DNA from: Perkinsus chesapeaki ATCC PRA-425
Taxonomy: Eukaryota > Protista > Perkinsozoa
Direction of reading: 5' to 3'
Assembly: GCA_013115145.1 (NCBI GenBank)
Contig: JAAPAO010000116.1
Span: 1-64,000, forward strand
DNA length: 64,000 nt
The translations under genes and the position numbers were made by a program. Of the stretch, positions 2,183 through 17,546 are shown one piece after another. Each line of letters opens with the position of its first letter. Positions within the stretch are counted from its first letter, which is position 1. The notes beneath the pieces are model-generated. The model saw nothing but the letters and a program-made list of their open reading frames with translations. It had not been told where the DNA came from and searched no databases.

Positions 2183-3425
2183 TTAGGAACCTGCCGATTC
2201 TCCGGTATTATTTGTTTCCGAAGCCATTGCATAAAAAAGAGAAGACTTATCCCAAGGGAAGAGATCTTGCGTCGAGGCGCTGCCACCTTCCAGCATGATG
2301 CCGCGCAACTTGTACTGCCGCGCCAACGCTATCTTATCAACGAGACGGGTCTGGGAGAAGAAGTAATAGCCACCCTGTATAGTTTTGTCGAGTATAACTG
2401 ATCCATTGCCCTTGGGGTCAGCGCCGAGGTCATACACCATATGAGAAAATCCTTCGCTGGGAGGGTATTTCTTCCTTGAGGGTGTTGCTATAGCGCTAAG
2501 AGGCACCTAAAGGTCGGGCAGAAGATGGTCGTCCAGCACGATAACATAACGTAAACGTTACTTGTAAAATCAAGCCCTCGAGTTTTGCTCCCGCGGATGT
2601 AGCATTCTTGATCGCCTCTTTCGCATGGTCATCCGTGTTGAATACCGGGACTTGATCACAGCTGGGCCATAGCATTACGATACTGAGGTCCGCTATCCTA
2701 GCGAGACCGCTGGCGTCCAGCACTTGCCACTCGTTGCATAGGAAGCTGAAACAAAAAATGTCATTATACGATAGGTATATATTCGTTCAGCAGTTCTCTA
2801 GGACTCAGAGTCTCAGTGAAGACGCATTACTAATGACCCCGCGATTCCGACTAGATGCTCACCTCAATGCAGATGTTAAATTCCATTTCTTCAAAATCGT
2901 GAGGACCTCCTTCAAACCCGTCATATCAGTTCGACTCCACACGGGACCCAAGACAAAGCCACTCACAGGATACTTTTTGATAAAACTTTGAACACGTGTG
3001 GTAAAAATCTTCTCGTTGAAGTGTCTATTGTCGGCAATCTCTAAACTGGCTAGGATTGACCCACTTTCGCTTTTCACCTTGTTGGAAAAGTCCAAGAAAG
3101 CCGTCTCATTCCAGGGTGCCTCGAAACGAGGCACGATACTACTATCACTCAAATGATATCCACCAAGAATGAAGCGTTGGCCTCCCATAGACAATAGCCT
3201 GTCGAAATAGGAGTCCCAAGTAAAGTCGGGCTCCTCTGGACACAACGTTTTGTTGGAGCAGAAGGGCGACTCCTTAATATTCCAAGGGTTGTAAATACCT
3301 TTGTAGAATTCTAGACGGCTAGCCGCAGCCAGTGCACTGACGGAAAGGACGTACGCAGTTGTGAGCATGATCTGGAGCCTCGCCGGATGAAGTAGCATGC
3401 CCTTGGTGAAAGACGGGAACTTCAT
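2183..3425 (-). CDS. GH18 chitinase-like secreted protein, non-catalytic, copy 1 (3 exons)
   Basis: Exons in ORFs 2859-3425, 2496-2723 and 2183-2506 with GT-AG introns. Signal-like MLTTAYVLSVSALAAA; ILASLEIAD and FIKKYPVSGFVLGP align to the GH18 SxGG and DGxDxDxE strands; C-terminal LVDKIALARQYKLRGIMLEGG..QD resembles the GH18 beta-8 region. Confidence 0.65.
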
Positions 3426-4640
3426 CGATGAGCGTTACTAACTCTACAGCTGATATGCTAGTCGCCTCACGCATGGCGGCGCAATGGCGCACGACTTCAG
3501 CCAAGGAGCGGCAATCCCGCTCCTGAGCTTCTCCGAAGCATATGTTGTTTAGAAGAACCCTAGAGATGGCAACGCTCAATTTGATGGTTGCGGTTACGAG
3601 TTATATTTGGTAACGATCAATTGCGAACTTTGTTGTTTAGCACCTTGACTGAGCCAGAAGCGATTGAGTGTCAAAGTCGTTGAGCGTTCCCCACTGAGCG
3701 CATCGCCTGTGGCGCCTTACCTAGAAGCCGATGTCTCCCTCGGCTCCAGATACTCCTGGCCTTTTAGAGAGGCCTGGATGGTCTTCCACTCTCCTGCGAT
3801 CCGTCGATTTTTCACGAGGCATTCGCATCATGCTCTCATGTTTCTTAAGGCATCGTGTTCGATTTAACCAAACTCATTCGGCTATATCACTTCAGCTCCG
3901 GTTGCCATATTCTCTCCTTCCCGTGGCGAGGCTTCTCGGGTTCCAGCGGCGTACCGCTCCACGTGCAGTTCATTTCGGAAGTGAACTGTGTGGAAGAATC
4001 CGCCACAGACCACAACAGCGACCTCGTCACGGGAGGATGAGGTGGGTAAAGAGAAAAGTCTGACTTGCCGTCTTTGTTTGAAAGAACACGCAGTGTTGTG
4101 CAGTGCAACTGTAATGCGGAATGGGAACAGTGTTATGGGGACACAAGTTGTGTTTGCGGTTCGGGGGGCCGTGGCCGACAGTTTGAGTTAATAACTCAGA
4201 GTTATGATCGGAAGGCGTTGAGGAAATACGAGGTACCCATATTGAATCACTGTGAATGCCCTCAGGCTCCAGGCATCCTTTGCGCGATATGATGGTTAAG
4301 CCAGCTGCGTTGCCGTTCAAGTGGAAGACTTTTAACCAAACCCACAACCACCCGGAGGTCCCACCGAGTGTTAGATGATCGTGAGAGTCCAAGATAGGCT
4401 TGAGGCAATTTTAGCCCTCACAAGTTGACAGTTTATACAGACTAACACTCGATAGGAGCATGATCGGATTTGATCGCCAAGGGAGGGAGAATTGTCTTGA
4501 CAATTCATTTGGGAGGGACTGGGAAAAGAAGCGGCAACAGTTGTATTGACCCGCTGCAGTTCAGCGGCATGTGCACTTGTTGAAATGGGACTGGGATGCG
4601 TAAGTTTGTACTCCACGGAGGAGTACCAGATTGATGTACA

Positions 4641-4701
4641 GGTCTACATGAAAGTCGTATTATATGACAACTTCTCATACAATACGACGTTCATGTAGAC
4701 C
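4641..4701. repeat. Long imperfect hairpin (~27-bp stem, 7-nt loop)
   Basis: ggtctacatgaa-a-gtcgtatt-a-tatga-caacttc-tcata-c-aatacgac-g-ttcatgtagacc, followed by the palindrome tgccgta-t-tacggca (4718-4732). Confidence 0.85.
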
Positions 4702-5557
4702 GGCTTCACCATAGGGCTGCCGTATTACGGCACGAAACTGAGCGTATCGAAAGAGCACACCTGAATCTAAGATAATCCACATATGTCACGTTATACGGTC
4801 ATCGATTTGGATGTAGTATCCACAAGCGTCACATCTTGAAAACAAAAGCAGATTCAAACACCCCAAAAGTTCGTAAATTCGTCGTGTCGTAGGCTAGCGT
4901 TAAACTTAGCGTAGGAATGGTGATACGCCACTTTCTGCGGTTAGTCTCATAATAGTGTAGTCTCCATCGAAAACAGTCTCGTGAAGGATTAGAACTTAGT
5001 GGCAGAAAACATACAGTGGCTAGGACTCGACTATTAACACTGTGCCCCAGATATATTCGGCACAAGAACAACGTCTATAGCAACGATATGACTAAGCTCT
5101 GATGAGGCCGGCGATACAACAGTGTTTCTTCGCTTCAGCATTCGTATCCTAACGCTGAATCGCTAAATCGCCTAGCGCTAATATCGGGGGTAGCCGTAAG
5201 AGAACTGTAAAAATTTTACATTTAATGCTCAGGTCACTTGGTCAAGTGGTCAAAAGAGTGGTTCTCGATGTTCGAGAGTTCTAGTTGGCGACGACAACTT
5301 GGCGTCGAATCCCAATACCTGGGCACCTCAAAGTCAGCTGGTTTAAGAAAGGTCGATTGATAGAGCGATTAAACAAACGAAGGAGGGAATCCAACGATGG
5401 TAACCGAGTCAAAGAAACAACCTGGAGCCATGATGGCTAGAGTCCATCACTATCTCAATGACTCACAATCTCAAAACAATCGTTTAATGAGCCCTACTAA
5501 GCTTTTCTCATCAACAAATAGTCATAATAAGCCTCTCCAAGCGGCAGTCCTTCACAC

Positions 5558-5672
5558 GCATAGTGGGTCACACAGCACCACAAAGAGGGTCTGCCAACAC
5601 CAAGGTCATTTTTTTTCAGCCACTAACAGCCAAAGACACTGCGGGCGGCCTACGGCCGCCCATAGGTCATAG
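5558..5672 (+). repeat. Left terminal inverted repeat (115 bp) of the MULE
   Basis: gcatagtgggtcacacagcacc...gggcggcctacggccgcccataggtcatag is the reverse complement of 12798-12911. Confidence 0.93.
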
Positions 5673-5698
5673 GTCATAGGTCTTTTCGTGGGGACAGC

Positions 5699-7487
5699 GT
5701 GATTATCTTCGATGAAATATCCATGCTCCATGATACCATAATTGAGGCCATCGACAAAACTCTGAGGTTCATCCGAGGCCAAGATGAGCTGTTCGGTGGG
5801 TGTTGTACCATTTTTGGGGGGGACTGCTTACAGCTGAGAGGGCCTGAACCTGCGAAACACGGAGAATTCGCGGAGCGTACCGTACGGCCGGTGTGGGAGA
5901 GCTCATTATGGAGGGACATGAACTTACAAGTTTACTACCTAACTCGCTTCCATCGAGGTATTCTGGGAGGATCTACTGCTACTAGGCCAGGAAGACGTGG
6001 GAGGCGGAAGCCACTCTTCAGTGGTAACGGCGTAGACGAAGATTATTTGAACCTTCTGGCTGAGCTGAGGAGCTGGAGACCAGACTCCGACTGGAATATA
6101 TCCAAACGGTCCCAGGAACTAGTCCATCATCTTGTCGATAAGGAGGGTCCACATGAACCTTCATGGTGCGCCATTACACTCTTCCGGGACAACTGCCGGG
6201 CTATCAATGATGAGCACTTAATGATCAATCCCGGCGAACTCATTAAATTTCACGCAGATGTATTTGATGATACCACCGGTGATGAAGATCTTCACAAGCT
6301 TACCATCAAGAAGAGTATCGGACTGAAGATCGGTTGCAGGGTAATCTGCAATACTAACGTTGAGCCATACATCCTCAATGGGGATATGGGAAGAGTTTCG
6401 GGATTCGTCGGTCTCACAAGGGGGCAGAATGAAGTTCACATTAAGCTCAAGCAGAGCGACTCGTTGCAGAATGTTGCGGTGCGGGTGAGCCTGGATAGAA
6501 ACTGCGAGGAGGTAGACGTTTATCCCGTGACTCAAGAAGTGTTCTCATCTGAAGGCAAGCTTCTATATGCATTAAGAAATGTACCGCTCGACCTTGGTGC
6601 GGCTATTACCTGCCATAAACTTCAAGGATGCACTCTCGACTATGCCGTCGTAGACTTGTCGCTTCGTGGAGGCCCCAATGCACCTAAGGCAGCTCACGCT
6701 GAGATCGAGAGATTACTAAGTCAGCCGTGGCTCCATGGAGCTTTGTACACTATGTTGTCGAGAGTGGGATCCTCGAGTCGCATATTTACGAAGTTTGTGG
6801 GAGATCTGGCCTTCCACAAGAAGGTTTTCTTCTCTACATCAGCTCTGGCCTTCGAGGATTGGTGTAAGCGTTCCAACGTTCTAACGCGATCTGCGTTGCC
6901 TGGAACGCCTCCATACCGCCGTCCGGTAGCGCAAGAGGATGACGACGATAATATATCCGCAAGTGTAGATTCATGGCTCGACGGACAGCCCAACCGTTCA
7001 GAAAGTGCAGGTGACCATCGTGTGATAACTCCGGAAGAATTATCAAGTATCCTGAAAGAGAGGGATGATCGACTTATCGAGTCCTTTGGAGGCATGGTTG
7101 CTAATCTACTGGTTAATTTCTCGCGAACAGGACTGCTCGGTTCGGCAGGAACGTGCCCCGTACCCCAAGCTAGCTTGAGCAACGTCGACGTAGCGACCTG
7201 CCACAATGACTCATTTTTTCGGATGGCACAAACTAATCTACCTTCATTCCACAGCCTCATGATGAATAATCCTGTAGACTCAATCCCATCTATTGATCGA
7301 ATGAAAGCGAGGGCCATGGCGGATGACAATCAAGGCTATCAGGGTTCCGATGAGACGGTCGAGCGCAGTCAAGAGACCGTGCCTTGCGAAGCACGGAACA
7401 GGAGCAGTGGGAATGATAATGATGACCTTCACGATGACACAGTGGACCGGGAAATCGATGGCTTGGACCTAAATGAGGAGCCTGACA
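5699..7487 (+). CDS. Pif1-family SF1B DNA helicase, 5'-truncated (motifs II-VI), followed by an acidic linker; inside the MULE
   Basis: IIFDEISML (motif II), FGGCCTIFGGDCLQL (III), YLTRFHR (IV), KIGCRVICNTN..LNGDMGRV, PLDLGAAITCHKLQGCTLD (V), GALYTMLSRV (VI). No GxxGxGK(S/T) Walker A upstream within the element. The frame stays open to 7687. Confidence 0.88.
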
Positions 7488-7521
7488 GTAATAAAGTTCT
7501 TCCCCAAGCTCACTACAGGGT

Positions 7522-10500
7522 ATGTCAGGTACAGAGGCTGGGCAACCAGACAACGAAGAACGATTCGCCCAATCCCCGTCCTCCAACGAAGATGAACCGG
7601 GCAGCAGCATCTCCGAAAGCAGCGGCATCCAGAGTTCTGATACAGAGGGCGATGAGATCAATTCCACTAGCGATTCCGCGTCTATAATGAGCACCGGCGC
7701 TAATCACTCTTCGAGCACTCAACGCAGCAGAGCCCCTAAAGGTCCAGGGGGCAAGTGGATGGAAGAAGCATTCCATGCGGTCAATGGGCCAATCGAAGAG
7801 GTGATAAAAGAGTACTTGGCAGGCAGACCATTTTTGACCCAAGTCAAGAGTGTTCACGAGAATCGTAAGAGACGTGAATTACGCTGCCTCCGGCGGCTTC
7901 CACCCGGTGAACCAGTAACTGGAAACAATGCTAAGCCCTCGTGGAGATTGTGGCCGAGCGATGCCTGCCAATTCTCATGTATTTTGGTGGTGGAGAGTGG
8001 CCCTCCGGGAGAGTTGCTCTGCAGCTTTTACGGCGTATGCTCAGCTGGCTCGTCTATTGATGCCTGGAAAGCACACGATCATCCTTACGATAGTCACCTA
8101 TGCAGGTAAGAGCAGCTTTTGAAGAGTTGCTTGACCACTGAGAATCAAAACATTGCCTGTTAGTTTTGGTTTAGAATCTAAATTTTAGATCTGTTACTGT
8201 TCCGCCCCCTCTGGTCGATCTAGCGGCGAGAGCAATAAGTAAGGATCCAACGCTCACAGCAGGCGACATCAAAGAACTGTGGAATGCCAAGCGTGATCGA
8301 GGGCTTCTTGGTAGTCGCGAAAGAGCATGGCTGGATCTGAAGGAAGATATGCCAGGCTACCCTGATGTCAAAGGTAGATCTAGGTAGAATGAAGACTCAC
8401 TCACGAACTGTCTTTTCCTCTCGTTAAACGGACTCAACCTAAGAGTCTCAGCCTGAGACTCTCAGGTAATATCAGGAATGTTGTCACATCAATAACTCGC
8501 CGTCGATTATATGGGCTGAAACTTGAACCTTTCCTAGAGAAGGTACAACGTGACATTGGCGAGAATCTTGCAGATCTTAACGTAAGTATGGAACAATGAA
8601 GGGCTTCCCCTGGGGTCTACGGCGAGAGTAAAGCCTACTGAGTAGACTAATGACGAACTCTTATCTCTTTTATCTACGCATGTCCAACGCCCAGTAGGAT
8701 ACTAGCCGGTTTAAATTTTGAGCGAGCCTTTGTCAATTCAATAATAAACACGGTATAATCAGCTATATCGACGACAAACCTTCATCATAACCACTGTTGT
8801 AGTATAGAGTCATAAGTATTGAGCTAGTCTCGTTGAGCACGAGAATCTATGTTCAAATAGAAGCTCGTAAACTCGCAAAAATTTTAGCCAATGTTTCTAA
8901 ATTGAAGTCCAATTGAAATATCACTAGATTTATATTATACAATATATAAGAGCTATTACACTATCACTAAAAATATAAAAATATAAGAATTACTAATGTT
9001 TAATTAATAAAATATTACTATATATATAGTATACAATAGTATAGTTATAATGCTATATTATAATATAATATTATGCAACTTATATTGTTCCTATCACTAG
9101 TAGTGATTCACTACTAACACTAATATAATAAGAATGATGCAAATGAAGGTATATAAATCTATATTAATAGTAAATATCTAAGGGAAATTTTGTAAAGCCT
9201 TGATTTCGCCGAGATTGATTGCAAATTGATTGCGATTGAATGATAACCGATTCTTACCGATAACCGATATTCAACCGATAACCTATTTGGATCGTTGCTA
9301 GGCATTTTTTGACCAGACTGCATCATATCATTATATAAACATATTATTATATAGACTATATGACTATTTTTCATGTGTGTTAAAAAACATAGATTTCCTT
9401 TTCGCTTTGTGACAGGTATCAGACATCATCGATGCTATAAAGCGAACAGGCTCAGAGGACGCCAGTGGGGTGGATGAGCACCTGCGGGATAAATCTAATA
9501 TATGCTTGATGACTCCAAATCCCACCTTGAAAGTCGACGAAGAAGGGAATCTTCTAGAAATGGCGATAGGGTTTACTTCACCCCGAATGGTGCATAATTA
9601 TTTGACTAGTGATGAGCTTGCTGCCGATGTGACCTTTAATCTGATAGCTGCGGAATGCTCGGTTTTCACCATGACCTCTATTAATGCTGCTGGAGCAGCT
9701 CGCCCAATTCTAGTAGGGTTGGTGAGAAGTGAAAACAGGCGCAGCATAGAAGATCTCCTGAAGTCTTTCCACGAGCTTATCAAGGATGCTGGTATCCGAG
9801 AATTACCTCGGATCACCCGCACCATTCAAGATGGCTCCAAAGCTCTTCATGGTGCCTTATCTACCAGCTTCGAACAAGCATCCACAAGTTGCTGCTACTT
9901 TCACTTCATGCAAGCCGCCAAAAGAAAAAAACCACCGGGGATAAGGGCAGGCTTGTGGAGTGCGCTGAAGAGTGACCTGAGGACAATAAGTAAAGCCTCT
10001 AGTCAATCGGAATTCACCTCTCTCGTCGAGCTCCTCTTTCGTAAATGGAACGAGAAAGGCGAGACAAAAGCCATTGCTTTTCTCGAAGCTATGGCAAGCG
10101 GGGAATGGTTTGATGGTGGTAGCTTCCGTTCCCGGTGGGCCGCTTGTCACAATGATGGCGTGGGTGGGAGAACGAGTAACGGCATTGAAGTATTCCACAG
10201 ATTCCTCAAGAAGACACTTCTCCGCTCTCGGAGGATGCGAACCTTATTGCAGTTTGCTTACGCCTTAGCAGGGGATGAGTGGAGATCCGTCTCGGCATAC
10301 AATAAGCATCGAGTGGATGGCAGGATTGTTCACCAGTCAGATAGGGTATCGGCTCTGACCACTGTCTCGTTCTCGCCTCTGCCGAGGACTCTTCCCCCAT
10401 CAGTGCGTGGTCCTTGTCAGAGGGCCTCTTGCCGCAGAGATGTCTGTTGTAAAGCATCTCATTACTTTGGTGTTGGTCAACACGTGTACGTATTCCGCGG

Positions 10501-11238
10501 CGATAAACCAAGTCGCGTTTCGGATTCCAGAATTGGGGTGGCTGACGACAAGCTATGTCTGAGAGTAACACAGAGCTACGATAACTTTGAGGTCGCGAAG
10601 AGGATAATGGACACCATATCACTTGTTACCTTTACTACTACTGCTGCTGTCACCCGGCTTCCCCGGGATGGAGGTCCAAGGTGCACATGTGAATCTTACG
10701 CAGCAAGAAGCAAGTGCCCTCATGTAGTAGCTTTGGGACGCCACTTCGGAGTTGATGACCAAGTAGCGTGGCAGAGAGCTGAAGCAAAACTTCAGAGAAA
10801 GCTTAGCAAAGGTGTAGCCGGGCCTGGTTTGAGGTTGAATGAAACTACGCGCTATGGAGGAACACGCCAGAGCCAGGCGCAGGCCCTCCGCGCCACCCAG
10901 TCCAGTATAAGAGCGAGAGGGCTCGATTGCTTCGATTGCCTCCGCATTCTATCCCTCTATCAGCTGAGCTACCTAAGATTAAGAAAAAAGAACTATCAGC
11001 GTGCTGTGGAGGCTATTTTGACTCACCCGCAGTATACTGCTCAACGAAGAAATGCGCCTCCACTGGGTGGTGGCATATTGACTGCGCTGAAGCTTGGTGT
11101 ATGGCAACGGGTTACCCATTGCCTGATCTGGCGAATCGCAGAAAGCCTTGGCACTGTCCGAGATGTAGACCTACCGGTAAAGATTCGAGAAAGAGGCGAA
11201 GGGATGAACTATGTTCCAGCTCAGAGTCCTCGCCCTAG
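7522..11238 (+). CDS. MULE transposase with N-terminal C..C..HxH Zn-finger-like region, DDE domain, SWIM and C-terminal PHD finger (5 exons, ~882 aa from ATG 7522)
   Basis: Exons 7522-8105, 8189-8373, 8466-8581, 9416-10904 and 10964-11238 join in frame across GT-AG introns with matching phases. Motifs: AADVTFNL (D1), TIQDGSKAL (D2), CCYFHFMQ (CxxH), TSNGIEVFH (E), SWIM CTCESYAARSKCPH, PHD CC...C.TKKC..WWHIDC...WHCPRC. Confidence 0.85.
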
Positions 11239-12182
11239 AATCTTTCATAGCGAGCTCTTTGGCAGTATATTTGCAGTATTTTGGGGGCTGCTACATCAAT
11301 AGTTAGTTTGTGAAGATAATGACAACTGATGATTCCATGCATTATGCACGACAGTATCATGATGACACTACCGATAAGTATGCATTATTTACTAATTCGT
11401 GAATTTTTAGTTTCGATCAGCGCGCTTCTGCTGTTGAGCTGCCCAGTGAGTCACTGATGATTGCCCCCGAGACCATATCCAAGGATGATTGATCTCCAGG
11501 GCTCTAGTAATTCGCCGGTTGTTCAATGTTACTCATTCAATGAATTTTACTGTTGCTCACTGAGCAATGCTCAGACTGCATGATCCGCTCACGATGTGAC
11601 TCCAGTTGGCATCCACCCCACGTGACACGACGGTGTACGCATTATGTCCTCTAATACCATCTATAGTATAGATTCTAATCTCGTGCTCTGGGGGGAGACT
11701 CTTCCCCTTTGCCGCATTCCGTCGCTCAATTTAGCATGTGCAATTTCGGGGAGTATAATTCATCATAAGAGACGAATAACCCGTAGGATTCGAAGCTTGC
11801 TGGGATGACTGGCACCCCAAATACCTTGAAAACTTTAAGTTGAAACGCGCGCAAAAAATGTGCTGCGGTACGGGTTTGAGCGGCGCCTAGGACGTTCCTT
11901 TGACTGACGAAGGCGACGAACTATTCCCTTGATTACATACAGTAGTGTTAAAACGACTACTAGCTCCTACTTCGCCTTAGCACGCTTGTCCTACCCTTGG
12001 TAGACTACTGGGTAGTACGACTACTACCCTTGGTAGACCGCAGTAGCTGCAGTTACTTGTTCAAGACTCTAACTTGAGTTACTCACGCTCGTGATGCTTA
12101 TCAGTGTCCTGGTAATGGTATTCTGATGACCCTCTTGTACCTTTGCGACAGTCGTCGACCGACTGTATACGATAGTCTATAC

Positions 12183-12640
12183 CTAGAACACCAAGTCTTC
12201 AACATCCAGCTTGCTCACCAAGCTTTTCAACAAGCCTTGTTGAGTACTGTGATCTGTTGCTATTGTCAATGCAACGATCCGAGAAACTAATTCTTCGAAA
12301 GCTCGTTTAGTCAACTGGTAGAGCTCCCGACAAGGACGCAGAACAACCCAGGTTCGATCCCTGCAATAGCCATATGAGAGAATGATTGGGAACGTAGCTT
12401 GCGGGTGGCTGGCTGGTATCGCTTAAGTAATGCCAAGGGGATAGCTGTTGTTGCCTTGGGAATCTTAGCCTACAAGCGCGACTCTCGGGCATACAGTATT
12501 GTTCATGCGCACACGTGCAGCGCGAAACGTTCGTGCAAGTGCAAGAAAGTTGAAAAGTGAGCACACAAAGGTAGATCCGGGCATCTCTTAAAGAAAGTCT
12601 CTTCCATGAGCTTCTAACTCGCGTGATGAAGTCCCGCAAG
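12183..12640 (-). other. Possible second, convergent gene or remnant in the right arm of the MULE
   Basis: Stop-free helical-looking frame 12360-12183 (DRTWVVLRPCRELYQLTKRAFEELVSRIVAL...LDVEDLVF*) behind a plausible ttgcag acceptor, with exon-like segments further upstream. No family recognised. Confidence 0.22.
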
Positions 12641-12797
12641 GCTCGATCATACTTCGAAGGGCAAGTCGTCGAGTGGACATTAGTATAGCAGCCTATTTTT
12701 GCGTCGACAAATACGACGGCCCTCTGTGGCCTCTGAGGGCAAGGCCGAAGGTGGCGAGACTTTCAATATTTCCGCATTAGGGCCTCGTCAGGTCATT

Positions 12798-12911
12798 CTA
12801 TGACCTATGGGCGGCCGTAGGCCGCCCGCAGTGCCTTTGGCTGTTAGTGGCTGAAAAAAATGACCTTGGTGTTGGCAGACCCTCTTTGTGGTGCTGTGTG
12901 ACCCAGGATGC
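12798..12911 (-). repeat. Right terminal inverted repeat (114 bp) of the MULE
   Basis: Reverse complement of 5558-5672; followed directly by the TSD CCTTCACAC. Confidence 0.93.
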
Positions 12912-13522
12912 CCTTCACACTCCCGAAAAGATGAACACCTCATCGCCTTCCCGTTCACATTTCGTGAATCACAAATGACTAGGATGTAGTCAATGGGCAA
13001 GTTGTCCAGGGTTCAAACTATCCTTGTTGCAGTCCGTCAATTGCTGAGGAAAAGGCGCCGATCGAGGGCCTTATTCAGGAAAGGAGCAGATCCTCCATCG
13101 CACGTCACGTGCGGCAGGTGCACTTCGCTAAAATTGGCCAACTCTAGCACAAAGCCTACATCAAGACGCAAGAAAAAAATTGAAATGACAATTGAATTCA
13201 ATGCATGGGAGTCGGCCGCCACGTGCTAGAGTGGCGTAGCCGATCTCTACGTGGCGCCGTAGAGCCTGGCCACCCCTACGATTGCGCTCTTAATTTAGCG
13301 CACGCCAATCTAATCTATTTACTACTTTGCGAGTTGAGTTAAATGAGACATGGGTCGTTTAACGGTGCAAGATATAAGTTAGTTATAGTTATAGGCCAGT
13401 ACCATCGTGTCCAGTGAACTAGACGATGAGTCTTGATATCTGTAACTGAGTTGAGCCCCGGCTAGGAACACTGGAAGTCTGACCGCTGCTTTTCTGTCAG
13501 CAAGATATAACTTCCTCCCCAA

Positions 13523-15549: not shown

Positions 15550-16130
15550 ATTATTAAGGTGACGGGCTGCTGCTGGTGTTGTTGTTGGCCTCCTCCTCGA
15601 TGGTGTAGCAGCCTCTTGTTGGCGTCCTCCTCCTCCTTGCGTCGCGCTGCGTTCTCATCAGGGTCTCCTCGGGTCGGCTTCTCACAAGTTTTCGCTCTTC
15701 CCTCTATGGTTTGCCCTCCGCGTCTTTCGCCCAAGCTCTCTATCTCTCGCGTCGTTCAGATCAGACTCCTTACAACCGACCGATCGTCTCGTGTCCAGCC
15801 ATGTAAGAATTCAGCTTGATCTCTCATCAAGTGAGTAAAGGGTCCACGACTGCTCATCTCGCTTTGTAGGACATCGCACCCGGTGCTGCTGCCGCTTGTC
15901 TTTGCGTTTCCGGCTTGTTCCGTGATGGTGCGTCTTGTTGCTTTTTCGCTGGTCATCGTTATGGTAAGGGCTCCTCCCCTCAATCTTCGCCGTGGACGAT
16001 ATCTTTCAGGTCCCCCTTATCGAGTTCGATCATTAATGTTTAGTCGGCTTTTGCCGAGCTGCCTGAGTGCCCCACTTTTCCTCGTTGCGTTGCATCAATC
16101 CGTCCAGTATCCTGTTCTTGAAGCACTCTC
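15550..16130 (-). CDS. Hypothetical small basic, low-complexity spliced protein, head-to-head with the succinyl-CoA ligase gene
   Basis: Exon-like frames such as GRSPYHNDDQRKSNKTHHHGTSRKRKDKRQQHR bounded by gt..ag. Gene model not resolved; boundaries approximate. Confidence 0.25.
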
Positions 16131-16225
16131 TGTGTGCTAGCTTCCCCGCTCTAGTCCTTCAACCTACCCCTATCCGCGGGCCCCCACCAATTCCCGTCAC
16201 TGCAGTTTTCCGACTTCCTCGTCCC

Positions 16226-17546
16226 ATGTTTTCCTCTGTGGTGCCGCGCAGCTCCGGTGCTGCCGCCGCTCCCCTGTCCCGTCTTGCCGCTCGGGCTTTT
16301 TCCTTCACTGCTCGCGTCTGGGTCGACAAGAACACCAAGGTCATCTGCCAGGTAGGATGCATTCATTGCATTTCAGCAGTCCGTCGGTTAGGGTTTGACC
16401 GGCAAGCAAGGAACCTTCCACACCGCGCAGGCGATCGATTACGGCACCAAGATGGTCGGAGGAGTTAACCCTAAGAAGGCCGGAACTACCCATAATGTTG
16501 GTGGAAAGGTAACCACGATTGGAGCTCAGGTTCGGCTTGGTGGTGGATTATATCACTTTAGGACTTGCCCATTTTTGCTAATGTGATGGAAGCGCGACAA
16601 GCTACAGGAGCTGACGCGACCGTCGTTTACGTTCCTCCTCCAGGTGCGGCCTCAGCTTGCTTGGAGGCCATCGAGGTAGACGTACTCTAGTCGTGGAAGT
16701 GGCTCATTTTGTTTCAGGCTGAGATACCGCTGTTGGTCTGCATCACGGAGGGCATTCCTCAGCATGACATGGTCAAGGTCAGTTGGTGACGCGAAGTTTT
16801 TCGGTAATTATCGCTATCAGGTTAAAGCGGCGCTGAAGATGGCTGGAGGCAAGACTCGGCTCATCGGCCCCAACTGCCCGGGCATCATCAAGCCTGGTGA
16901 ATGCAAAATCGGCATAATGCCAGGATACATTCATAAGAAGGGCAAGATCGGAGTGGTTTCCAGGTGAGCGCTTCGGAGAACTCGAAGGTGAAGAAGCTGT
17001 GTGTTTTTGACAGGTCCGGCACCCTAACGTATGAAGCTGTGAACCAAACGACTGAGGTTGGTTTGGGTCAGAGCACCGTCGTTGGCATCGGCGGTGACCC
17101 TTTCAACGGTACCAATTTTATTGATTGTTTGGAGAGGTTCGTAGAGGATCCTCAAACCGAAGGTGACCAATCCTTCACCTGATACCGTCTATCCTCTTCA
17201 TGTTCAGGTATAATTTTAATCGGCGAAATCGGAGGTGCTGCTGAAGAGGAGGCCGCTGAGTGGTTGAAGCAGCATAATAAGGAGAAGAAGCCCGTCGTCT
17301 CATTCATCGCGGGAGTAACTGCGCCGCCTGGACGAAGGTAGGTGTTCGAAAGCAAGTCTGTGGAATGAGAAAGTGCTCTTTAGGATGGGTCATGCTGGAG
17401 CCATCATTTCTGGTGGCAAGGGGACAGCTGCCACAAAGATCGCCGCCTTGGAGGACTGTGGAGCTAGCGTGGTGCGTTCACCTGCCGACTTGGGCGTTAG
17501 AATGCTCGAGATGTACAAGCAGCGTTACCCCGACAGATCGATATGA
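16226..17546 (+). CDS. SUCLG1: Succinyl-CoA ligase alpha subunit, mitochondrial precursor (multi-exon)
   Basis: Ser/Arg/Ala-rich presequence; [59 protein letters not shown] and active-site [11 protein letters not shown]; introns of ~50 nt. Confidence 0.96.

Follow-up and report, generated by a model that had tools for sequence, protein, structure and literature searches.

Among the transposons of eukaryotes, the Pif1 helicase is treated as a hallmark of the rolling-circle Helitrons, and the accessory domains usual in Mutator-like elements (MULEs) are DNA-binding fingers, proteases and chromatin modifiers. A helicase in or beside the transposase protein is a feature of the DDE transposons KolobokH and AcademH, according to two papers (PMC9587614; PMC10799480, citing Kojima 2020). 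Here we describe an element at positions 5558-12911 of a 64,000-nucleotide stretch of DNA from Perkinsus chesapeaki ATCC PRA-425 (contig JAAPAO010000116.1, positions 1 to 64,000; this whole stretch is called the window below), in which a Pif1-type helicase region and a MULE transposase are enclosed by the same pair of terminal inverted repeats (TIRs). Full-text literature searches, with Repbase and Dfam outside the search, found no description of a MULE that carries Pif1. A survey of Mutator elements across eukaryotes makes no mention of 'helicase' (PMC6446971), and a survey of Pif1 and of the origin of the Pif1 and Helitron helicases makes none of MULE, DDE or Perkinsus (PMC8788227).

We consider it probable that the element is a degenerate, single-copy member of a MULE family found across Perkinsus, a genus of parasites of oysters and clams, that helicase and transposase were joined in one fusion before this family split into two lineages (A and B), and that the helicase has been under purifying selection since. 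With similar confidence, we expect intact members to encode a protein of about 1,500 aa composed of an N-terminal Pif1-family helicase of superfamily 1B (SF1B), an acidic linker, a Cys/His DNA-binding region, the MULE DDE core and a SWIM finger, the last possibly followed by a PHD-like finger. The family is characterised by TIRs of 115-580 nt, 9-bp target site duplications (TSDs) and a total element length of 7-15 kb. The copy in the window is itself only a decayed relic.

The window element and its relatives in Perkinsus

The element is delimited by inverted-repeat arms at 5558-5615 and 12854-12911 (58 nt, 97%) and by an adjoining second pair at 5610-5672 and 12798-12860 (63 nt, 98%). These two pairs make up one TIR of about 115 nt with a single 1-nt indel. 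Its left copy lies on the forward strand at 5558-5672, begins with the terminus GCATAGTGGGTCAC and is 97-98% complementary to the right copy, which lies on the reverse strand at 12798-12911. The 9-mer CCTTCACAC is present at 5549-5557 (left TSD) and again, letter for letter, at 12912-12920 (right TSD), abutting both TIR ends. The TIRs of about 115 bp and the exact 9-bp TSD put forward in the original prediction, which was made from the sequence alone, are therefore both borne out. MULEs have TSDs of 8-11 bp, typically 9, and TIRs that are usually at least 100 nt long; the window element lies within both ranges, as does a complete element of P. olseni (L005, below) with its 579-nt TIRs, whereas Helitrons have neither TIRs nor a TSD. 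A 31-nt core of the TIR has two sites in the window, one in each TIR, against a chance expectation of 0, and no further copy of the element was found in the 64 kb.

The transposase is recognisable in the open reading frame (ORF) at 9470-11302, which matches the Pfam MULE family (PF10551) with 37.2 bits against a cut-off of 27.6; 59 of 78 relatives match the same profile. All of the D, D, CxxH and E residues with which a MULE DDE transposase had been predicted are in place: the first D in AADVTF (9626-9628), the second in IQDGSK (9830-9832), the CxxH signature as CYFH (9893-9904) and the E in NGIEVFH (10187-10189). These four stretches align to the family consensus DxT, DGxxA, CxFH and TNNxxExxNxxxK, and the SWIM pattern CTCESYAARSKCPH follows at 10682-10723. 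The nearest homologue is a P. olseni protein (P0016) with 59% identity. Judged by its letters, the transposase has open and conserved exons, and its DDE part looks intact.

The helicase has fared less well. The ORF at 5699-7687 is free of stops and scores 40.2 bits against Pfam PIF1, for which the cut-off is 25.9, but the match is confined to profile positions 106-188 of 223. The P. olseni helicase is homologous from 5684 on, 12 nt inward of the TIR and just before motif II (DEISM); motif I (Walker A) and motif Ia are absent from the window helicase, which thus lacks the complete motif set of the Pif1 family. That set, Walker A included, is present in the related proteins and loci L001, P0100, P0020 and L005. 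What remains on the forward strand at 5684-7487 comprises the DEISM start, the Pif1 signature between motifs II and III (IIEAIDKTLRFIRGQDELFGGCCTIFGGDCLQL, which aligns with S. cerevisiae Pif1 via the P. olseni homologue), HRG, TCHKLQGCTL and YTMLSRV up to about 6870; a C-terminal extension specific to the family follows as far as about 7321, and after it an acidic linker. The nearest homologue, P. olseni P0001/L001, is 51% identical over about 560 aa; L001 encodes the missing N-terminus upstream (Walker A GVAGSGKT, motif Ia STTGLSA), and its helicase scores 80 bits against PIF1. The 5′ loss is a deletion that extends into the helicase from the inner end of the left TIR and removes the first ~130 codons, including Walker A and motif Ia. 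Internal deletions of this kind are typical of derivatives of DNA transposons.

Both domains are nevertheless part of a single public gene model, KAF4672201.1 (FOL47_000784, P. chesapeaki, 1509 aa; P0017 in our numbering), which is identical to the window and was recovered by an exhaustive HMMER search with the transposase as query. Mapped onto the window, it has five exons. In three-frame translations the helicase is read in a frame that ends at 7687, and from about 7494-7529 on the transposase follows in the +1 frame; the model joins the two frames only via a predicted 41-nt GT..AG intron at 7488-7528 of the forward strand (exon map of P0017; letters confirmed by read contigs), which is suspect because the other introns measure about 80, 90 and 830 nt. 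With no P-loop (Walker A), and with the helicase and transposase frames offset by one base, the window helicase is by its sequence dead. The Pif1 region of the original prediction is thus confirmed as a stop-free PIF1 match from motif II on, but the copy is not intact: Walker A and motif Ia are missing, and the frame is out of register with that of the transposase.

Neither defect is attributable to the assembly. Over 5643-8970 and 8941-12827, the sequence is reproduced without any difference by contigs built from three public DNA runs, and word depth in the interior of the element is close to that of the flanks in each run (114 vs 120, 165 vs 182 and 13.6 vs 13.4). The 5′ truncation and the frame offset are therefore real and the locus is single-copy, and on these grounds we rejected assembly error as the source of either the truncation or the offset at 7488-7528. 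To go by the reads, the genome contains no second copy of the window element at 85% identity or above, and the single-copy depth of the interior likewise led us to reject a multi-copy family of high identity. Elsewhere in the genome, just the outermost ~40 nt of the TIR are seen again, with loose ends at 5604 and at 12864-12865.

In a sequence search of the PDB with the helicase, the best match was S. cerevisiae Pif1 (5o6b, 6e-20), accompanied by human PIF1 (6hph) and bacterial Pif1 (Thermus, Bacteroides), the bacterial structures being aligned over residues 5-444; the top matches were all Pif1, and the Helitron transposase Helraiser reached only 6.5e-6. The nearest proteins outside the transposon family are bacterial Pif1 of ~500 aa, often from Saccharibacteria, and these are only 25-29% identical, which argues that the helicase is no recent copy of a host gene. 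The HUH Rep domain (Helitron_like_N) had no Pfam match in the window ORFs, P0017, P0100, P0020 or the L001 ORF, so that its predicted absence holds for the full-length relatives as well as for the window copy. Given the lack of Rep/HUH and the low identity to Pif1 outside the family, the window locus is neither a Helitron nor a recent host-gene copy.

In P. chesapeaki, P. olseni and P. marinus alike, a helicase and a MULE transposase share a single gene or locus. A second P. chesapeaki protein (P0100; FOL47_000298, 1485 aa) begins directly with the helicase, matches PIF1 from profile position 2, Walker A included, as well as MULE, and is collinear with the window protein through helicase (32%), Cys/His region, and DDE core with SWIM (transposase 24%). 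In P. olseni, the peptide VERDIGEGSPRIEAHSEDI is at once the C-terminal tail of P0001 and the N-terminal head of P0016, and the helicase ORF therefore runs straight into the transposase. BLAST searches with the helicase found helicase parts at the N-termini of the MULE proteins P0020/P0096 and P0022/P0099 (P. olseni), P0027 (P. chesapeaki) and P0038 (P. marinus ATCC 50983), and tblastn found a full helicase followed by a transposase in L004 (P. chesapeaki), L005 and L006 (P. olseni) and L007 (P. marinus). Of these, L005 is a complete element with 579-nt TIRs (98%), the 9-bp TSD CTGTTAAAG, all helicase motifs and a transposase, and it is flanked by host genes on both sides.

These sequences fall into two lineages, A, which includes the window copy, and B. 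Identity between the two is only 24-32%. Both lineages conserve motifs I, Ia, II, signature/III, V and VI. In the MULE tree, the Perkinsus transposases form one clade with a support of 98 in the Shimodaira-Hasegawa-like approximate likelihood-ratio test, within which A (99, with the window copy inside) and B (97) separate. In the helicase tree, the transposon helicases are again one clade (100) with the same split (A 95, B 96). That the two halves co-diverge argues for a single fusion before the A/B split, and three species, two deep lineages and congruent trees together support the distinct Pif1-bearing MULE lineage that the original prediction had proposed. As for selection, the differences per codon position between the window and P. 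olseni helicases are 0.38/0.30/0.66, and LWL85 gives a dN/dS (the ratio of non-synonymous to synonymous change) of ~0.2, a value that is qualitative only since dS is saturated. The NG86 and YN00 methods gave no dN/dS, synonymous sites being saturated in this, the only comparable pair.

Several observations weigh against so simple a history. The outgroups of the helicase tree are all prokaryote-type Pif1, so that the helicase may have come from a host, viral, bacterial or Helitron source. An OTU-protease-MULE protein from a metagenome (P0102, also P0025; JGI sample 3300059473) falls inside Perkinsus subclade B, its position there unresolved, which would mean either a single loss or replacement of the helicase or more than one gain of it; the protein may be a sign of domain swapping at the N-terminus of the transposase, or come from a relative of Perkinsus that has yet to be sampled. 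In lineage B, the Q of motif V 'HKxQG' is replaced by V/I, and the activity of its helicase may therefore be altered. Pif1 is not uniformly retained either: it is full-length in L004, L005, L006 and L007, but partly or wholly lost in the window copy, L003, L008 and L010. L001, conversely, keeps the helicase without a transposase, and these partial losses on either side imply that the two halves can decay independently. Among the P. chesapeaki loci examined, no intact lineage-A copy with both TIRs was found. Finally, the long fusion proteins are all gene predictions; no RNA run containing the window gene was found, and its expression, its splicing and the 41-nt intron are predictions from DNA alone.

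Of 77 transposase relatives recovered by exhaustive HMMER searching, those from Perkinsus alone carry the helicase; its absence from the others is weak evidence given the fragmentary gene calls of metagenomes. The ESM Atlas returned plain Pif1 clusters only.

Possible roles of the helicase and alternative explanations

What we can say of the identity and evolution of these elements is far more secure than anything concerning mechanism. Excision of a MULE leaves a double-strand break, and cellular Pif1 is needed for DNA polymerase delta-dependent D-loop migration in break-induced replication. By analogy, the DDE domain would excise and integrate the element as in other MULEs, which would account for the 9-bp TSD, and the tethered 5′-3′ helicase would work on the DNA of the transposon ends or of the donor break. 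There it might drive long-tract, D-loop-migrating repair synthesis from a sister or homologous copy, which would restore the long element of 7-15 kb at the donor site and make transposition effectively replicative. We put forward this role in repair synthesis at the donor break only tentatively. The same reserve applies to the broader proposal that the MULEs of Perkinsus provide the first case of a native fusion between an SF1B Pif1 and the transposase of a DDE cut-and-paste element and that they mechanistically require the helicase, be it for replicative resynthesis or for end melting and complex disassembly, which we regard as possible but rather doubtful.

It is also conceivable, if on the unlikely side, that the helicase is integral to the element but serves the chemistry of transposition itself, either by melting the TIRs for synapsis or hairpin formation (extruding the palindrome GGCGGCCTACGGCCGCC), by stripping the transposase complex from the DNA once strand transfer is complete, or by blocking telomere addition at the excision break. 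The palindrome is perfect and stands ~88 nt from the terminus in lineage-A TIRs of three elements from two species, the surrounding TIR having diverged: at about 5646-5662 and at 12808-12824 in the window, at 4572-4588 and 14012-14030 in L003 (P. olseni) and at 4330-4346 in L009 (P. chesapeaki). Its sequence makes it a candidate transposase-binding or structure-forming site, and its fixed distance from the terminus favours a function at the ends. So does the covalent tethering of the helicase to DNA-binding and DDE domains. The known activities of Pif1 include protein displacement and removal of telomerase, which would suit such a function as well. Other MULEs transpose without a helicase, however, and both the window copy and L008 lack the helicase N-terminus yet have intact-looking ends, which shows that ends need no helicase in cis.

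A different possibility is that these genes are no longer transposons but domesticated host genes, the window locus being a pseudogene of one. Single-copy depth, annotation as an ordinary gene and an architecture conserved in three species under purifying selection would all be expected of such genes. Against this, TIRs with conserved termini and exact 9-bp TSDs bound the genes in two species, there are many paralogous copies that are variously truncated and have different neighbour genes, and the similarity to other loci is confined to the outer ~40 nt of the TIR. We therefore consider domestication to be quite improbable.

Less plausible still is a one-off capture, in the manner of a Pack-MULE, of a fragment of host Pif1 by the window element, which the original prediction had held open. 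It is true that only a 5′-truncated helicase fragment lies between the TIRs, that this fragment starts right at the TIR and that the copy has no counterpart in the genome at 85% identity or above. However, the same helicase and transposase lineages are fused in three species and in two deep sublineages with congruent trees, no host-like Pif1 above about 29% identity was found, and the element carries its own transposase, unlike Pack-MULEs; capture by this one element is contradicted by the fusion in three species and by host-like Pif1 being only 25-29% identical. Chance adjacency or nesting of a MULE with a Helitron or other Pif1-bearing element, or a chimera of the assembly, might be suspected given that Pif1 is otherwise typical of Helitrons among eukaryotic transposons and that the P. 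olseni L001 helicase has no MULE downstream, but it can be dismissed, since no copy examined has a Rep/HUH domain, Helraiser is a far weaker match than cellular Pif1, a single TIR pair with its TSD encloses both helicase and transposase, the reading frame is continuous in P. olseni and in P0100, and independent read sets reproduce the sequence exactly.

Further features of the window copy and its relatives

A fusion of Pif1 to a MULE transposase within one Perkinsus family thus remains our preferred interpretation, and the remaining parts of the window copy can be laid out along it on the forward strand. Downstream of the predicted 41-nt intron, 7529-8107 encodes a Ser/Asp/Glu-rich linker and the N-terminal Cys/His-rich region of the transposase (PSWRLWPSDAC...HDHPYDSHLC), which is 49% identical to residues 28-180 of P. 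olseni P0016 and collinear with P0100; no Pfam family matches this region. An ATG lies inside the transposase region at 7687, from which a helicase-less transposase could in principle be made, to go by the sequence. Two short transposase exons follow within 8188-8587, at about 8188-8376 and about 8466-8587 with a ~90-nt intron between them (tblastn of P0016; exon map of P0017), and then an AT-rich intron of ~830 nt at 8588-9419 (sequence; exon map of P0017). The main transposase exon at 9420-11302 holds the MULE DDE core and the SWIM finger (Pfam MULE, 59% to P0016, collinear with P0100); the 3′ end of the ORF at 9470-11302 is probably intron read-through. In another frame of the same strand, a PHD-like Cys4-His-Cys3 stretch at 11002-11172 (ORF 10927-11238) was read by eye and is probably a last exon absent from the public model; a PHD finger had no significant Pfam match there, and 'PHD-like' refers to the pattern only. 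The 3′ subterminal region at 11303-12797 is non-coding, with no homologous ORF and with single-copy depth.

Two repetitive segments are associated with the locus. Within the long intron, 8940-9270 is highly repeated, with a word depth of ~16,900 vs 165 in one run (X2), ~4x in another (X1) and 2.7x in a third (X5), and contig breaks flank it at 8941-8982 and at 9267. This AT-rich segment may be a high-copy repeat or organelle-like DNA, perhaps of nuclear mitochondrial type, nested in the intron. Upstream of the element, 5182-5450 is repetitive at 2-6x flank depth, each of the three DNA runs showing numerous alternative joints and loose ends there, and the MULE was probably inserted beside or within another repeat. 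The ends of the element and its TSD are intact, and the ends look able to be mobilised in trans. Excision and reintegration are indicated indirectly, by the intact TSD at this single-copy locus and by copies at differing positions in three species.

Among the relatives, the TIR terminus GCATRGNGGG(C)TCAC is common to lineage-A elements of two species. The L003 contig ends 8 nt past its right TIR. No TIRs of at least 20 nt were found in L004, L007 or L008, of which L004 lies on a short contig, and L007 and L008 may be degenerate. L005 has subterminal tandem arrays at 3096-3265 and 16075-17330, with matches ~42 nt apart, and at 8944-9383, between the two halves of its helicase, a hairpin-like inverted repeat of 440 nt with 182-nt arms (93%), which could be an insertion resembling a miniature inverted-repeat transposable element or part of an intron. 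L001 contains a full-length lineage-A helicase at 472-2868, the ORF of which stops shortly past the peptide shared with P0016. Neither tblastn nor tblastx found a MULE downstream of it, where instead there are unrelated ORFs of 379 and 147 aa without a Pfam match; L001 is either a helicase-only derivative or a rearranged copy. In L008 (P. chesapeaki, lineage B; 2360-6238), the helicase is 5′-truncated and only residues ~342-515 are left, so that loss of the helicase N-terminus, as in the window copy, seems to recur.

Comparison with known systems

The retention of Pif1 across a genus through deep divergence suggests that an SF1B helicase can be needed by, or can benefit, DDE transposons of the cut-and-paste type as well. 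The family joins KolobokH and AcademH in indicating that the movement of long DNA transposons repeatedly calls for DNA unwinding or repair synthesis. If our interpretation is correct, DDE transposons would here have recruited a helicase independently for a third time, and eukaryotic transposons would have recruited Pif1 twice, the other case being the Helitrons. The family would provide a natural system in which to ask what a transposase-tethered helicase does, and it bears on the debate about the origin of the Helitron helicase. It also explains a number of hypothetical proteins of Perkinsus, annotated as 'ATP-dependent DNA helicase' or 'SWIM-type domain-containing', as transposon genes.

KolobokH and AcademH are the closest functional analogy, in that a cut-and-paste DDE transposon has recruited a helicase. 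Their helicases are of superfamily 2 (RecQ or DEAD/Helicase_C) and lie downstream of a Kolobok or Academ transposase, whereas in Perkinsus an SF1B Pif1 lies upstream of a MULE transposase. With this transposase and this helicase the element belongs to neither group, and the recruitment in Perkinsus looks independent of theirs. The RepHel proteins of Helitrons and Helentrons share with it a Pif1-family helicase as an integral domain of the transposase, but Helitrons have an HUH Rep nuclease and neither TIRs nor a TSD, while the Perkinsus element has TIRs and a 9-bp TSD and no Rep was found in it. With cellular and bacterial Pif1 the helicase has in common Walker A, Walker B, the Pif1 signature and motifs V and VI, and it aligns over the whole helicase core; it differs in being only 25-29% identical, in a lineage-specific insert after HRG, in a conserved C-terminal extension and in being joined to a transposase. 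Pack-MULEs likewise hold foreign coding sequence within MULE TIRs, and in the window copy this sequence is indeed fragmentary. They lack a transposase, however, and carry recent fragments of host genes, whereas here a transposase is present and the cargo is ancient, under selection and common to the whole family. It is to MULE/MuDR elements (MuDR, Hop, Muta1, Phantom, and MULEs with SWIM, OTU/Ulp1 or SET) that the element corresponds most directly, sharing the DDE core with CxxH, the SWIM finger, long TIRs and the 9-bp TSD. The metagenomic relative P0102 carries an accessory domain of the usual type, OTU; the Perkinsus transposase differs in that a complete Pif1-family SF1B helicase is fused to its N-terminus, and the family is thus best described as a MULE with a new, integral accessory domain.

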